NCBI GenBank assembly: GCA_037379345.1
Contig: CM074517.1
Location: 5,022,001-5,086,000 of the forward strand
Reading direction: 5' to 3'
DNA length: 64,000 bases
From: Perna viridis
Lineage: Eukaryota
The notes beneath the pieces are model-generated. The model worked only from the letters and a program-made list of their open reading frames with translations, had not been told where the DNA came from and ran no database searches. Position 1 is the first letter of the stretch, and the number at the start of each line of letters is the position of its first letter. A program made the position numbers and the translations under genes. Of this stretch, positions 2,121-19,053 are shown piece after piece.

Positions 2121-3042
2121 TGTCAATTCTTTATTTAATATGTATCTACAAAAAATACTGAAGCGTCAACAGTGAGACATTTCAAATATGTCAAAATCCT
2201 AGTACAGGGCCAGTTAAAAACAGAACACAGAGACAATCTACATGTACATTGTAATAAATTGAATAAAATAGATTACATATATAAACTGACGATGAGGAAA
2301 ACAAGATGTAACACAAAAAACTAAAGCACTGTTTCATGCTTATTGCATATGTTAAGAATACTTTCAGTCCCCCCTTTTAATTTTCTATTATTATACACGC
2401 CTTGAAGTTTACCAATATGTTTCACGACCTGGTTTATACAGTTTCAATTTACAATTTACAGTTTACAATTTAGTTTTTTTCTTCTATACCAATAATTCCC
2501 CTTTGATTTTGGGAATAGATAAGGCTCTAGTGTTGTTTTTTTATAGTATTGATGAAGAATAAAATTGGCCGTATGACATTGTGTAAAATAAAAACTAATA
2601 ATTGTGTAATGGATAAAATGCATTTCATAATTAATTGTATAAGAAGAATTAGTTCTCCTTACTAGTAATTAGTCTTTACAGTGCAAACTGGTGTATCCAA
2701 ACAGGAAAAAAAAATAGACTCATAACTGAGTACATCCGTCAAACAGGCATGCTGAACTTAGTACATATTGATATGAATATATGTTTATGTTGACTTATGA
2801 AAAAATGTATAAACCTAGAACTCAGTAGTTATTAATATGTAATTTTTTGATAATTTGATGATCATTATTATTTTACCAAAGTTACAGATATCCAACAACA
2901 ACTTGAGAATACTATCATACAGAAAAAAATTATAATATTTAACAGAGAATATCCTTCTGACAATCAACTATTCAGCTTGGGAAGTTGGTTTTTAGAAGGT
3001 CTCCCTCTTGGTTGTATAATATAATGTATATTTATTTTGTAG

Positions 3043-10179: not shown

Positions 10180-12321
10180 GCATGGCATGATTTAATGTTT
10201 TGGATAGTCAAACTGACGTGGAAGGATTTAATAATTATGGATTCGCCTCACTGACACTACAGGATTTTTGTAGTATTATATGGCCTCACTGGCATGGCAA
10301 GGTTTAATTGGTAGAGGATTGTCTGATTCAATCGGGAAAATATTGAGTAACAGGAATTGGAAAGTCGCACTGGCATAATCCATTAATCCATTAGGTAGGG
10401 ATAGTCTTACTTAAAAATTCTACTATATCAGTAAAACTAACCCCAAACATAACGATACCATGCCATATCAAAGCGACCATTTTATACCTGTCAATCTAGC
10501 CTACTAGCTAAACCATACCAAATGTTCATCAGGTATGATAGTTACATTGACAGTAGAGTATCATGTATAGGATAGTCTAGCTGACATACCAGGATTTCAG
10601 TATGTCACGAAAAGTTCCATTGACAGTAGGATTTTGTTTGATACGGGAATAGTCTCACTGACAAATAAGTTATAAGGATGCGATACCGGTAGTTTCTTGG
10701 GCAGGATATAGTTTTAGGATAGTCTCGTTGACATGGCAGGATATAGTTTTGGTATAGTCTCACAAATACAGCAGAATAGAGAAAGTCGCAGTGACATGAA
10801 AGGATTCATTTAGGTTTTGAGTAGTTTCGATAAGCTAGCAGGATTCAGTATATATTGGGTGTAATATTTGCTTTGATACAGCAGGAGATAATGAGTATGG
10901 TATGGTTGCACTGACAACATGTGATTTACATGATTACATTAGGTTTGGGGTAGTCTAACTACATGTAATCACAGACCCAGTAATATCCGAATACAGGATA
11001 GTTTCCGACTGACATGGCAATATTCCATAAGCTTGGGCATTAATAGCCTCACTGAAATGGAAGGATTTCAATAAGCAAGTGATTGCCTCAATGAAGTGGT
11101 AGGATTGCACTAGGTATGGGACAGTCTCACTGACATGGCAGGATTTCAGTAGGTATGGAATAGATAGCCTCACTGAAAGATTTCACTAGGTTGGTGATCA
11201 ATGGCCTCACTAACACGACAATTTTCATTAGGCTGGGGAAAGTTTCATGCACATTGGAGCCATTTGTAGGGTTTCTTTAGGTTGCCTAACTGACGACAAA
11301 GTTCAATAGGCAGAAGAATGTCTCACGGACATTGAAGGACTGATTTCCGTAGGTAAGAAACAGATAGCATCACTATTATGACAGGATTTTATCAGATATG
11401 GGGTTGCCTCACTGACGTGGCAGATTTCATTAGGCAGGGGAAAGTCTCACTCACATGGCAAAGATTTCAATATGGCCTCACTGACAGAGCAGGATTTCAT
11501 TAGATATGGGGAAAGATAGCATCACTAAAATGGAAAAATTTCGGTAGGTAGGTGATAGTCTCACTGACATGGCAGGATTTCAATGGGTAAGGGATAGCCT
11601 CACTGACATGGCACATTTTATTAGGCATGGGAAAGTCTCACTGATATGACAGTATTGCCTTTGGCAGAGAATAGATAGCCTCACTAAAATGACAGGATTT
11701 CATAAGCCAGGGAATAAATGGCCTCACTGACATTACAGGATTTCATTAGATATGGGATAGCCTCACTGATATGATATGGTAAATTTCATTAGGCGGGGAA
11801 AGTCTCGCTGATATGGCATGATTTCAATAGGTAAGGAGACATGTCAGGATTTCATTATGTAGGAGATAGATGTGTGCCTTCCTGACAAGGCGGACTTTCA
11901 TTAGATAGGCGATAGGTTGCCTTACTGACAAGGCGGAATTTCATTAGGTAGGTAATAGATAGTCTCACTGACATTGCAGGATTTCATTTGGTATGGGTTA
12001 GTCTTGCTGACATGGCAGGATTTCATTAGGTGGTGAATAGATAGCATCACTGACATTACAGGGTTTCTTTTGATATGGGTTAGTCTCGTTGGCATGGCAG
12101 GGTTTTATTAAGTGGTGAATAGATAGCGTCATTGACATTACAGGAGGATAGTCTGACATTGTAAGTTTTTATTTTGTATTGGATAGTCAGTCCATCTGAA
12201 CCCTACACGATTAAATAGGTATAGGACATTTCATGATATCATTTAATTTAGGATAGTCTCACTGATCAAGTAATATCTGAAACGTATGGGATAGCCCCAT
12301 TGACATGGCAGGATTTCATTT
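10180..12321. repeat. Degenerate ~39-bp satellite (GATAGTCTCACTGACATGGCAGGATTTCATTAGGTATGG); resumes at ~16005-16090 after the LINE
   Basis: Dozens of diverged copies of CTCACTGACATGGCAGGATTTCA, best conserved at 11120-12320. Confidence 0.85.
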
Positions 12322-12331
12322 GATTTATGAT

Positions 12332-15300
12332 TTATTCCATTTCGTCCATGGGTGGACATAGGGCGACTACAGTTTCTCTCCATTCGCTTCGGTTTTGGGC
12401 GATGGTGTTACAATTCTTCCACGTTAGTCCTACTCTCTTCAGTTCAGAGTTCAAACCCCTCCTCCAGGTGTTCTTTGGTCTTCCTCTTTTTCTTTGCCCT
12501 TGGGGATTCCAATCTTAAGCTTGCTTTGTAGTGTTTTTATTGTTCTTCCTTAAAGTATGACCAATCCATTTCCATTTTCGGGTTCGAATGGTGTTTTCTA
12601 TTGGTTGTTGTTTTGTTCTTTGCCAGAGTTTCTTGTTTTTTATTTTTTCTGGCCATCTGATATTCAGTATATTTCTTAGGCATTTGTTAACAAAGACTTG
12701 TATAGATTTCATGGTGTTTTCTGTTTCTCTCCAGGTCTCGCAACCATATAACAGGACAGACTTAACATTGCTGTTGAAAATTTTGATCTTAGTAGTCGTT
12801 CTCAGTGTTCTACTTTTCCATACTGGCTTTAGAATGGAAAAAGCCTGTAATGCTTTCATCTTTCTGGCTTGTACATCTTCGTCAGTGCCTCCAGTTGTAC
12901 TCATGACACTTCCAAGGTACGTAAATTTATCTACATTCTCTATCTGTTGGTTATTTACCAATATTGGATCCATCTGGTTTTGTTGGATTCTCATGGCTTT
13001 GGTTTTGGCTGTGTTGATATACAATCCTGTTCTTTTAGCTGTTTCTTCGAGATGGTTGACCTGGTGTTGGGAATCTTGAAGACGATGCGATAGTGTGCAT
13101 ATGTCGTCTGCAAATTCGAGGTCTTCTAGACGAGATGTTAGTGTCCATTGTATACCATGAGGGTCGTTGTAAGCTGTTGTTGCTATCCAGTCGATGACTA
13201 TGAGAAAGAGAAGGGGAGAGAGAATGCATCCTTGCCTTACGCCAGTTGTTATAGGGAAAGGATCCGTCAATGTACCAGCATGTATGACCTGACAAGAGAA
13301 TTCTTCATACAGTAACTTAATCATGGAAATAATCTTAGGAGGAATCCCATAGTGTCCTAGAATGTTCCATAAGACCTGATGATCTATGCTGTCAAATGCT
13401 TTCTGGAAGTCAATAAAGTTTAGATATAGGGATGACTGCCATTCGATCGTTTGCTCAATAATTATTCTGAGTGTTGCAATCTGGTCGACACATGATCGTT
13501 CTTGTCTAAATCCAGCTTGTTCATCTCTCAGCTTGCTATCAATCTCTTCTTTCATTCTTTGTAAGATTATACTGCATAGGATTTTACTAGGAATGGACAA
13601 AAGAGTTATTCCTCTCCAGTTGTTGCAATTGGATTTGTCCCCCTTTTTAGGTAGTTTTACCAAGAGTCCCTTTTGCCAGTCTTTTGGAATTTTTTCTTTT
13701 TCCTATATCTGGTTTAATAGCCCAAGAAGATATTGAATGGTAGTGTCATTCATGGACTTGAGGGCTTCTGGTGGTATGCCATCGATTCCCGCTGCTTTCC
13801 CATTCTTAAGATGTTTTAGGGCTTTTCTTACTTCATTTTCGGTAATTTTGTCAGTCTCTATGTTAAGTGTTGGACCTTCTTCAAGTATTGGTGGATTTGT
13901 TGGTGGTGGTCTGTTCAATACCTCACTAAAGTGTTCTTTCCATCTGTCAAGCTGATCTTCTAGCTTTGTGAGGGTATTGTTGTTTTTATCTTTGACTGGT
14001 AAATTTTCATTTTGAGAGATCTTTCCACTGAGTTGTCTTGTGATGTTATACAATGTTTTGATGTCTCCTTTTAAGCAGGCGTTTTCAGCTTCTACTGCTA
14101 ACTTTTCAGCATGGTTTCTTTTATCTCTTTTACAGCTTTTCTTCACTTCTCTGTCTTTTGCGCTGTAAAGGTCTTGCAGGTTTTTCTTTTGCTGTCTGGT
14201 TTTGGCACTCATCAACTTTTCTTTTATTTCCCTTCTTTCAGATATTGTATCCCATGTTTGATCTGACATCCATTTCTTTCTTTTCACTTGAATGAAACCA
14301 ACTGTTTCTTCGCATGCTTCCAGAATGGCTGTCTTTGTTGAGTTCCAGATGTCATCAATATCATTGTTCATTTCTTCGTTGTCAAGATCTAATAAAGTAC
14401 TAAATTTGTTCCTGAATGTAATTTGGAAGTTTTCTTTCACTTTCTGATCTTTAAACTTCTCAACATTAAACTTCCTTTTTGTAGTCTCTCTTTTCTTTGT
14501 TGTTAAAAGCTTGAGTTTAATTTTTCCAATTACAAGGTGGTGATCTGATGCTGCGTCTGCTCCACGTTTTGTTCGTACATCTTGTAATGAAGATCTCCAT
14601 CGACGGCTTATTGTTATGTGGTCTATTTGGTTTTCAGTGTCTCCAGATGGTGAAATCCAGGTGGTTTTATGACAAGATTTATGTGGAAACCAAGTACCGC
14701 CAATTACTAGACTGTTTATAGCGCAAAAGTCAGCAAACATCTCTCCGTTCTCATTCATTTGCCCTATTCCATGTGGTCCTATCTCCCTTTCTCTACCTCC
14801 TCTGTCATCACCTACTTTGGCATTCAGATCTCCTAAGATGATAAGGATGTCTCTTTTAGGAACGGCATTAACAACTGATTGTAATAAGTTGTAGAAGTCA
14901 TTTTTATCATCTTCGTCTGCGGTGTTTGTTGGTGCATACACCTGTATAAATGTTGTTTTCTGGAATCGAGTGTCAAATCTAGCTGATATCACTCTTGCAG
15001 ATATTGGATTCCACTCCAAAAGCGATTTCTTGGCTTTCTTTGTAAGCATGAATCCCACGCCTTTGTCATGTATGTCGTCTTCATTTGGATTTCCTGAGAA
15101 TATGACCGTATGACCTGAAGATAGTGTTGTCATTCCAGCTGTATTCCATCTTACTTCGCTGAGTCCTAGAATTTCGATATTGTATCTATCCATTTCGTTC
15201 GCAATTTGCAAGCTTTTGCCACTTTGATACATTGTTCTAACATTCCAAGTGCCTATGGTTGTTGGTTGTTTTGGTGAGAACAACTTCATCAGCTTTCGCG

Positions 15301-15394
15301 TCATTTGCTGTCCTCGATGTTTGGTTTGGTCCTCTTTCTCTAGTCGTTGACGAGTCCGAGGAATGACTTTTACTGTAATCGTTTCTGTAACCAT
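12332..15394 (-). pseudogene. RTE APE-RT ORF interrupted by two in-frame nonsense codons
   Basis: The ORF-track pieces 13703..15394 and 12515..13663 share one frame. TAG at 13703-13705 sits where W is expected (QI*EKEKIPKDW). TAA at 12515-12517 sits where L is expected (QA*DWNPQGQRKRGRPKNTW...VVALCPPMDEME*). The natural stop is at 12332-12334. Confidence 0.88.
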
Positions 15395-15768
15395 TTGTAT
15401 CCACTAGTGGGGGGTTGGCCCTCTAGCTTCAGCTTTATTTTAATGTGGTGGTCAGCAAGTCCCTCACATGCTTTTGTATCAGAGTCAGCTCTCCTAGATA
15501 GGTTCCCTACCATGGGTGACGACTCCTTTCTAGCCGGGTTTTACATCAGAGTTTCCTCTCCTAGACAGGTTCCCTTTCAAAGGTTTGATCCCAGTCTGAC
15601 CATCGTTTTCTGTCTGGGTTGTCTCCCGTAGCCTTTGACTCAACAGTCCATCACAAGGCAGCGATCTATTTAACCCATAGGTGGGGCAAGGTTGGTGAGA
15701 GCCAGGGCGTGTTCCACGCGCCGGTGGGCCTGCACTCTGCACCTCTAGGGTCCTTGTTACTCCGAGAT

Positions 15769-16005
15769 CCCCTTCATGTTAGCCTTGAGTACTAGACCCA
15801 AGTTACCGTGTGTTACCTCGGGGAGGCAAATTGAAGGAGTCTTGGTAGTGTAGAGGCTATGTACTGCCAGAGGAAGGCTTCTGCTTACGCTGCTCCCCTT
15901 TTCGTCTACACGTAGACTAGCCAGCGTCAGTAGCGATCTAGAGACGTTTGATCACTACTGCACTAGACGCATATCACTACCCTGTGGTTATTAAGCCACC
16001 CACAC
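15769..16005 (-). ncRNA. Putative HDV-like self-cleaving ribozyme at the 5' end of the RTE element
   Basis: Manual fold on the - strand: P1 GUGUG(16005-16001)/CACAC(15812-15808); P2 CUCCUUCA/UGAAGGGG; P3 GCC/GGU; L3 UCCCCGA; P1.1 CC/GG; P4 CUUGGGU/ACUCAAG; J4/2 GCUAA with the candidate catalytic C at 15782. Confidence 0.7.
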
Positions 16006-17785
16006 AGGATTTCATTTACACTGATATAATACTATTTGATAGGTATAAGATAATACCATTCCATTTAGCTCAGGATAGTCTCACTGATCCAACACACCTA
16101 ATATTCTGAAGATTCTGATTTAAAGGATGCAACTTATCTCATGGCTCATCTTGGCTTATATATCCTTAGAATCAAATGGGGACAAAAAGAGTTATACTAC
16201 TAAGGCTTTACGGTCGTCATCCGATATGGTGTGTCCATCTAAACATGAGAGCATATTCGCTAAATTTGTGTATGTATATACCGGGCATGATACAAGACAC
16301 TCGAGGGAACTCGTTTATATGTAGGCTACTAGGACATGTTCGGTCCATATTCATGATTTTTGTAGAGTCCGTGTGGCTCGATGTTTCATTTTATATCTGT
16401 ATATTATGTGTCTTTTCTGTCCCAGTTTCTTTGCTAAGATTTCAACCGCCCCGACATCGATTTTTACAAAAAAATTGGTGCAATTTTAGTCTTTATTAAT
16501 AGGATTTACATTACAAGTGGGTAGTGATTTCAATTTGTGATGCTAAAAAAATACAATACTTTAATTTTCCGTAATTCCACTAATAGGGGGATTCCGGTTA
16601 AGGAAAGTCTAAATTTTCAAATAAAAATAAAATTATTTAGCCCATAAGTTAATTTAAAACCCTTGCCATCTTTGTGAAGTGGCCTTAGGGAGGGGTTACC
16701 GGAATAGTAGTAATTAAGTTGTTAATTTCGAAAATGAACCGTTCGCCGGAACTAATATAGAACACTTCAAGTTCGTTGAAGTGTAACAGTATAAGATAGT
16801 ATTTATAACGGTAGAAAATCATTATGACAAAACGGACAATTAGATAAAACATGACCCCATTTCCCCTCCGCTCTAGGCTATATTTGTACCATAAACATGA
16901 CCTCCTTACTTTAAGTGGTTGTATTTTATACCTATGAGGACCGAAATGAATATTTACAATTTGTAATTTCAGTGAAGCATTGGAGAGCTCTCATCAAGGA
17001 CAGGTGTCGACTTTTACCTGAAAATGTCATAATTTTCAGTTGTTCGGTATATAAATGGTGATATGTTAAATTTGCCTACGGCAAAATGTTTGAAAAAACT
17101 GTTCACAATTCGGGTCCGAACTATAGCCACGGGAAGCTATCCAGTAAAATCTTAAACAATGCTATAAACTTTAAAACGGGTAAGTGCTATACTTATACAT
17201 GTATTATTTATGAGAAATCAAACAAAAGAAACTTAACTGATCAAGGTGATTTTATATGACATTGTATATAAATTCTGACATATGTATCATCATTTTGACA
17301 TGTACAACTGACAGGCGCATAATTATACGGTATATTACTAAACAGTTAAGGTTGCCTGGATTGTGTAAACATCAAATTAGCGGCAATTAAAAAAAAACAG
17401 AAATTATGAAAAAGAATTAGTGACAAATGTGTGACAAATGTGTGACTTCCGTTATACTGCTAATGATAGTAAATGGATTGATAGGCAGTCTTCATAAGGT
17501 AACTATTCATAACCAAAAGTTGCTAAATCAATGTTCTATCTACTGTACTCTTGTTGCTCCTTGTCGGCTCCTGATTGTGATATAAAAGATGTTATGATAC
17601 GCTATGTATTGCTTTTGTAATCCGGAAGAGCCCGAAAAACATTAAGCGCTAATTGTGCCTCTAATATCTCTATAGTGCTGTGTTCTAAAAAGGAAAGGTG
17701 CCTGGTGGCTCTTTCTACCTTCTCCTAAAATAAAACAGTAAAATACAAGAGCTGGCAAAACAAAACAAGCAGTTATAATAGTGTA

Positions 17786-19053
17786 ACAAAACAATACTAG
17801 ATATGTACCCTGTTCCGTGTGTAACAAAATGAACATGTACCATATGGCGTTGAAAACTATAATGGACTTGTTTCCTATGCCTTGACTAACAATAAGGACA
17901 TGTTCCCTATGCCTCGAGTAACAATAAGGACACTAGTGTTCCCTATGCCTTGAGTAACAATAAGGTCACTACTGTTCCCTATGCCTTCAGTAACAATAAG
18001 AACGTGTAACGATAACGGACATGTTCCTTAAGCCGTGAGTAACAATAAGGACCTGTTCCATATATAAATATACTGGATCTGTTTCCTATGCTGTAATTGC
18101 AATATTGGACCTGTTCCTCTTTGTCGTGAGTAACAAAGCAATACTGGATCTGTTCCCTATGTCGTGAGTAACAAAACAACACTGGATGTGACCATGTGTC
18201 GTGAGTAACAAAGCAATATCGGATTTGTTCCCTATGTCGTGAGTAACAAAACAATAATGGATCTTTTCCCTATGCCTAGGTAACAAAACAATATTGGATC
18301 TGTTCCCTATGCCGTATATAACAAAGAAATATCAGATCTGTCCCTATGTCGTGAGTAATAAAGCAATATCGTAGGTAACATAACAATACTGCATGATCTG
18401 TTCCTATGTCGTGATAACAAAGAAATATCGGATCTGTCCCTATGTCGTGAGTAACAATGAAATCGGATCTGTTCCCTATGTTCTGAGTAACAAAACAATA
18501 CTGGATCTGTCTCTATGTCGTGAGTAACAAAACAATCATGGACCTGTTTCCTATGCCATGAATAACAAAACAATTCTGGATCTGTTCCCTAAACTGTCGA
18601 TCTCAAAACAATACTGGATCTGTTCCCTTTGCTGTGTGTGAATTAACAATACTTGATCTGTTCCCTATGTCGTAGCAAAACAATATTGGATCAGTTTCCT
18701 ATGCCGTAAGTAACAATACTCGACCTGTTCCCTATGTCGTGAGTTACAAAACAATACTGGATCTGTCTGTATGTCACGAGTAACAAAACAAGACCGGATC
18801 TGTTCCATATGCCGTTGGTAACAAAACAATAATGGATCTATCACTTAGTCGTGAGCAACAAGGCAATATCGGATTTGTTCTCTATGTCGTGAGTAACAAA
18901 ACAATACTGGATCTGCCTGTATGTCATGAGCATCAAAACAATACTGGGTCTGTTCCCTATATTATGAGTAACAAAACAATAATGGATCTGTCTCTATGTT
19001 GTGAGTAGCAAAACAATACTAGATTTTTTCCCTATGGCGTGGGTAACAAAACA
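17786..19053. repeat. Degenerate 38-bp satellite (AACAAAACAATACTGGATCTGTTCCCTATGTCGTGAGT)
   Basis: Roughly 30 diverged tandem copies; they explain the repetitive minus-strand ORFs at 17979-18573. Confidence 0.9.

Follow-up and report, generated by a model that had tools for sequence, protein, structure and literature searches.

A predicted HDV-like self-cleaving ribozyme at the 5' end of RTE-clade retrotransposons of the mussel Perna viridis

RTE, R2, R4 and L1Tc elements can carry an HDV-like ribozyme at the 5' end, which cuts at the 5' junction or close to it and so releases the RNA of the element from a co-transcript (PMC3774820, PMC6765202); for RTE elements, too, such ribozymes have thus already been described (PMC6765202, PMC3774820). 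Drz-Agam-2 (drz-Agam-2-1 and Rfam family RF01788, drz-agam-2-2) comes from RTE elements of Anopheles gambiae. Experiments have shown that large HDV-like ribozymes, drz-Agam-2-1 among them, are activated by a closed domain in J1/2 which holds P1 next to P2, the "pinch" (PMC4908430). R2 ribozymes of Drosophila and other animals also process a non-LTR 5' end from a co-transcript, but R2 belongs to another clade and is site-specific in 28S rDNA, and many species recruit upstream 28S sequence for P1. In Trypanosoma cruzi, too, a dispersed non-LTR element of the APE type, L1Tc/NARTc, begins with an HDV-like ribozyme (PMC6765202). Finally, twister variants at the 5' ends of non-LTR elements of Schistosoma mansoni (PMC8501958) have the same proposed job, with an unrelated fold.

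Here we consider an element from the window, that is, the whole stretch of 64,000 nt of P. viridis DNA that was analyzed; all coordinates without a locus name refer to it, and the element is read on its minus strand. As judged from comparison of natural copies, the first ~239 nt of this mussel RTE-clade element very probably encode an HDV-like nested double-pseudoknot self-cleaving ribozyme. It shares with drz-Agam-2 the element clade, the 5'-terminal position and the layout of the core as it stands in the window family: P3 with three pairs, L3 with the seven nucleotides UCCNCGN, P1' (the 3' strand of P1, likewise 7 nt), the GG of P1.1, UAA, P4, and the J4/2 sequence GCUAA. A structured J1/2 insertion with a shared AUAGCCUCU-like motif is also present in both (PMC4908430). 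On the other hand, the mussel element scores only 19–21 bits against the RF01788 gathering score of 38, its J1/2 has roughly three times the length (161 nt for the window copy, compared to ~55 nt) and forms a multi-helix junction instead of one hairpin, its G1 pairs with C and not with U, and the host is a bivalve. Compared to R2, the mussel P1 lies entirely inside the element, and L1Tc/NARTc differs in being compact (77 nt, without a large J1/2), of an L1-like clade and from a protist host.

The element itself is an RTE-type non-LTR retrotransposon extending from ~16007 to ~12322. It has a single-frame ORF (15394–12332) for an endonuclease of the APE type, a reverse transcriptase and a DUF6451 domain, the Pfam matches being Exo_endo_phos, RVT_1 and DUF6451. 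Assignment to the RTE clade agrees with the single ORF with an N-terminal APE-type endonuclease and a reverse transcriptase, the 3' end made of a short repeat, and the target-site duplications (TSDs). In the window copy the ORF is broken by two in-frame stops (13705–13703 and 12517–12515), the frame otherwise running on to 12334–12332; given these stops, this copy is dead. The element is flanked by a 13-nt direct repeat, AAATGAAATCCTG, whose 5' copy occupies 16017–16005, while the same 13-mer at 12321–12309 adjoins the 3' end of the element, ...AAATCATAAATCA. The 3' ends of the family consist of ...AAATCA followed by variable AATC-type repeats, without a poly(A) tail, and the TSDs of family copies are 6–17 bp long.

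The insertion occurred in a host repeat with units of ~100 nt, where gatcagtgagactatcct...aatgaaatcctgccatgtca recurs on both sides (16150–16008 and 12308–12000); because the element sits inside this repeat, a part of the apparent TSD context is repeat sequence. The host flank also contains a perfect GUGUGUU on the minus strand (16097–16091), 84 nt upstream of the damaged P1 strand at 16007–16001. Were this flank transcribed together with the element, the GUGUGUU could pair with P1' of the window copy, in the manner of R2 with upstream 28S sequence, but it may as well be a pure coincidence of the GU-rich repeat.

All helices of the original prediction are found at their minus-strand coordinates on reading the sequence, and the canonical order of a nested double pseudoknot (P1, P2, P3, P4, with P1' between P3' and P1.1) is observed. 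The 5' strand of P2, CUCCUUCA (15839–15832), pairs with UGAAGGGG (15776–15769), which ends the ribozyme; three pairs of this helix show compensatory changes. P3 is formed by GCC (15827–15825) and GGU (15817–15815), closing L3 UCCCCGA (15824–15818), in which U15824 and G15819 are the equivalents of U20 and G25. It is followed by the 3' strand of P1, AACACAC (15814–15808), whose pairs 5 and 6 covary with the 5' terminus of the element, and by the GG of P1.1 (15807–15806), which pairs with C15823 and C15822 of L3. The 7-bp hairpin P4 (CUUGGGU 15802–15796 with ACUCAAG 15790–15784) has the loop CUAGU, and J4/2, GCUAACA (15783–15777), aligned to GCUAA of RF01788, contains the presumed catalytic C15782.

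The 5' strand of P1 requires a correction. It was originally placed at 16005, starting with GUGUG; this string is indeed present at 16005–16001, but homology with other copies shows that its register is displaced by 2 nt within the GU repeat. The homologous strand is 16007–16001, with the sequence CUGUGUG in the window copy as against GUGUGUU in 26 others. Compared to the family, the window copy has G1 replaced by C or by the flank and U7 replaced by G, which leaves five pairs in either register. The 5-bp P1, previously listed as an atypical point, is thus true of the window copy, but is copy-specific damage, the family having seven Watson–Crick pairs. Similarly, the coincidence of G1 with the TSD junction holds at the family level, while here G16005 is the last base of the duplication, and the junction is ambiguous, since the final 2–3 bases of the 5' TSD copy may equally be the first bases of the element. 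With G1 lost, U7 changed to G and only five pairs left, the ribozyme of the window copy is probably impaired: this copy looks like a decayed family member, whose own activity is doubtful. The HDV-like reading, to judge by these comparisons, holds better at the level of the family than in the window copy.

The genome from which the window comes (723 Mb) contains at least 40 copies with 96–99% identity, most of which stop matching at one common base. These copies begin with GUGUGUU followed by GGUGGC, and GUGUGUU is a perfect 7-bp Watson–Crick partner of AACACAC ~190 nt downstream. The flanks are unrelated starting from the base before G1. Pattern counts in this genome are 40 for exact matches to a 22-nt core string, 66 for a degenerate core pattern, 26 for exact matches to the intact 5' terminus, and 125 for the 3' terminus at no more than one mismatch; the reversed control gives zero in each case. 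A shared 5' end of family copies, as implied by the original prediction, is therefore observed, most copies ending at G1.

The TSDs provide an independent definition of the terminus. The 3' ends of 20 full-length copies were compared with their flanks, and the 3' anchor was present in 18. The TSD adjoins G1 exactly in nine of these 18 copies, one to four extra bases separate it from G1 in five, two copies start at U2, and in two the junction is ambiguous, so that by TSDs G1 is the first templated base in 14/18. Extra, non-propagated bases are also known from the 5' junctions of ribozyme-processed R2 elements (PMC3774820). We also considered the T-rich bases upstream of G1 as non-templated additions, and rejected this, as they mostly belong to the TSD and the extra bases are seen in only the five copies. 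Templated sequence starts with G1 not only in full-length copies of the window family, but also in those of a second family in this genome, described below.

Uniform 5' ends alone cannot separate a cleavage site from a transcription start at G1. The main alternative is a conserved structured 5' UTR, serving, for example, in translation initiation, binding of the reverse transcriptase or as an internal promoter, that resembles HDV ribozymes without cleaving, the uniform 5' end being set by such a start; we consider it improbable.

The second family (family B, the window family being family A) was revealed in the same genome by the degenerate core pattern and has 22 exact copies of its own core. 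It starts with GUGUGCU and has P1' AGCACAC (e.g., L056:1403-1635, L047 and L062); at least 11 different flanks adjoin its G1, unrelated right up to this base. One of its sub-lineages starts with GUGUACU and keeps AGCACAC, which creates an A·C mismatch at pair 5 of P1. As this sub-lineage has inserted at four or more independent sites, perfect pairing of P1 is not strictly needed for spread. Four other family-B 5' ends (L110–L113, C13, 33.6–35.9 Mb) have an identical upstream flank, and are segmental duplicates of one insertion of the A·C sub-lineage rather than separate insertions.

Outside P. viridis, the closest named relatives of the endonuclease ORF are Mytilus edulis proteins (64–71% identity). 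Three M. edulis copies, representing two lineages, have an alignable 5' UTR (L034, L074 and L073), and a pattern scan of metagenome contigs added two more relatives (L076 and L077); a metagenome scan with the invariant UTR block produced no match. L074 has P1 GUGUAUU with AAUACAC (seven Watson–Crick pairs), and L076 has GUGUGCU with AGCGCAU, including a G1·U wobble. The first seven bases thus match their own P1' in families A and B, L074 and L076, and seven Watson–Crick pairs starting at the cleavage-site G are formed in intact family-A copies, family-B copies and L074. In more distant RTE relatives (L032 and L035–L042, with proteins 46–68% identical), the part of the 5' region in common with the window family is no more than the distal 5' UTR, and no HDV-like core was found in them by Rfam or by the relaxed descriptor. 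In one further RTE relative with 46% identity, from an ENA contig (ERZ25069863), the ORF starts at 3001 and is preceded, at a distance of ~200 nt, by a twister-P1-like match to RF03160 (L033:2750-2804, E = 2e-6; 41.5 bits, short of the gathering score of 67). This recalls the twister variants described for non-LTR 5' ends in Schistosoma (PMC8501958).

Covariation was assessed in an alignment of 15 sequences, with all comparisons made between natural copies. In the named structure, 94.7% of cells form standard pairs, compared to 33–47% in slid controls with the 3' partners moved by 1–3 columns, a contrast that is inflated by the structure having been read from one of the aligned sequences. The latter does not explain the two-sided changes, which are observed in six pairs (pairs 5 and 6 of P1, three pairs of P2 and one of P4), with G-C/G-U switches in several more pairs of P4. 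The covariation score was reached by none of 500 shuffles, and an earlier alignment of 12 sequences gave the same picture. The pairings of the original prediction are thereby borne out across copies, as P1, P2 and P4 keep pairing in five to six lineages. This covariation speaks against a non-cleaving UTR, as it links the first 7 nt to a strand whose place, flanked by P3' and P1.1, is precisely that seen in HDV ribozymes.

Conservation of the unpaired and short elements of the core is more mixed. P1.1 CC/GG is invariant except in L077, a truncated metagenome contig, and as it never varies, it is uninformative for covariation. The G-C of J4/2 is invariant in 15/15 rows, with GCUAA present in most. 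L3 is conserved, having the UCCNCGN form in family A and Medu-A, where P3 is GCC paired with GGU or GGC. In the B-type lineages (family B, L073, L076 and L077), P3' is GAC instead of GGU/GGC, resulting in C·A at the middle pair of the 3-bp P3 in every one of them (8/15 rows). This mismatch favors a structure without catalysis; still, family B is young and multi-copy, and therefore the C·A pair seems to be tolerated or somehow compensated there. Moreover, the G25 equivalent is A in L076, and J4/2 is altered in L076 and L073, single copies that may be dead. G1 pairs with C in 10/14 rows, the G·U wobble being seen in L076 only; as G1·U is common but not universal in HDV-like ribozymes, its rarity does not exclude membership in this class. 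L3 (UCCNCGN), P1.1 GG/CC and J4/2 GCUAA agree with the catalytic core found in RTE ribozymes whose activity has been demonstrated by experiment (PMC4908430), which again argues for a cleaving RNA.

The original prediction had a J1/2 of ~160 nt folded into hairpins, and this is confirmed: J1/2 comprises 161 nt (16000–15840) and, according to RNAalifold, pair counts and the minimum free energy (MFE) fold, forms a closed, covarying multi-helix domain. RNAalifold finds five parts: a first hairpin right after P1 (15999–15996/15987–15984), a closing helix (15981–15975/15850–15844) ending 4 nt before P2, a long hairpin (15970–15920), the hairpin at 15917–15904, and a small helix besides. The long one is the hairpin recognized originally, with the core CAGUAGUGAUC (15960–15950) and GAUCGCUACUG (15938–15928) and its base extended by a conserved stretch; the next one pairs GUCUA (15917–13) with UAGAC (15908–04). 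In this domain 94.7% of cells are paired, with 16 pairs changed on both sides and 25–53% in slid controls, numbers that lean towards the predicted structure, as it was derived from the same alignment. Family A also allows a J1/2 hairpin in the style of the Rfam drz-agam-2-2 model, but we discarded it, as this hairpin lacks conservation and is in competition with the closing helix, which covaries. In the nested-only MFE fold of an intact copy, P2, P4 and the helices of J1/2 are recovered, and neither strand of P1 is paired; the z-scores of folding, –2.0 and –1.6, are modest. As closed J1/2 domains activate large HDV-like ribozymes (PMC4908430), the length of J1/2 is no argument against the fold.

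J1/2 also holds invariant sequence blocks, more conserved than its helices. Just past the ribozyme, L034 of M. edulis matches a 23-nt block of the 5' UTR (15741–15719) at every position, and further downstream blocks almost as well, and such blocks are more conserved than the ribozyme helices. This pattern counts in favor of the structured-UTR alternative.

So do the scores of the covariance models. In a permissive Rfam scan of 11000–18000, the sole ribozyme match is to RF01788 drz-agam-2-2 at 15916–15769 on the minus strand (20.7 bits, E = 0.04), with L3, P1', P1.1, P4, J4/2 (GCUAA) and P2' aligned at high posterior probability. The RF01788 scores (20.7 and 18.7 bits) are compared to a gathering score of 38, and the RF01787 scores of the Mytilus relatives (26.3 and 25.1 bits), to 37; the gathering score was reached in no lineage scanned. 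In the region scanned, nothing but the core matches HDV-like models of Rfam, and it stays below threshold throughout. As covariance models cannot score the pseudoknotted P1, the RF01788 match is silent on the cleavage site. A search of the whole genome with RF01788 had as its single best match L031:1501-1635 (C14:1255894-1256028, 31.8 bits), which was dismissed as spurious in spite of its E-value, being AT-rich, with U at the position of the catalytic C and no L3 motif. A relaxed descriptor gave six matches in 470 kb of shuffled sequence, about one per 80 kb, and was not used as evidence. RNA-seq was also of little help: four raw runs from the same organism contain only 16–56 reads on 1.1 kb over the 5' junction of family A (L016:1200-2300), many of them with mismatches of another, diverged family; sense depth over the ribozyme is 0–1, too thin for 5' ends, and there is no pile-up of read starts or ends at G1.

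The HDV-like double-pseudoknot reading thus gains support from the copy ends, from the covariation of P1, P2 and P4, and from the matches to HDV-like Rfam models. A chance resemblance, with a GU-rich 5' end matching a downstream ACAC run in one copy, is extremely unlikely: the window copy forms only five pairs in two possible registers, an unrelated GUGUGUU is present in the host flank and the relaxed descriptor has its background of false matches, but P1 exists in three sequence versions, in different lineages, each version being matched by its own P1', P2 and P4 covary, and the reversed-pattern controls are zero.

If the predicted ribozyme is active, the following scheme may be suggested. 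The element would be transcribed as part of a longer RNA, in which the first 7 nt (P1, GUGUGUU in intact copies) would pair with AACACAC ~190 nt downstream, the closed four-helix J1/2 domain pinching P1 next to P2. The core, composed of P3/L3, P1.1, P4 and the J4/2 cytosine (here C15782), would then presumably cut the backbone just 5' of G1. The upstream host RNA would be discarded, and the retrotransposition template would begin exactly at G1 with the whole ribozyme retained, and therefore each full-length daughter copy would regenerate the ribozyme. The cleaved RNA with its 5'-OH might be translated without a cap.

A broader interpretation, which we offer tentatively and regard as rather unlikely, would see the ribozyme as a composite 5' module of unusual size, in which J1/2 and the 23-nt block have a second conserved function and the C·A pair in P3 of family B is tolerated or tuned, and does not reflect decay. 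Such a second function, if real, might consist in bringing the translation machinery, or else the protein encoded by the element, to the uncapped cleaved RNA.

In the literature searched, we found no report of HDV-like ribozymes in RTE elements of molluscs. For annotation, the true 5' end is now defined for two young RTE families of this genome; curated Rfam thresholds miss the mussel RTE ribozymes. The copies also constitute a natural series for the tolerance of the HDV-like core, with an intact P1, a 5-bp P1, A·C in P1, C·A in P3 and a "pinch" by a very large J1/2. Taken as we propose, the mussel families would extend ribozyme-processed RTE elements to bivalves, and would do so by comparative evidence rather than by the resemblance of a single copy.
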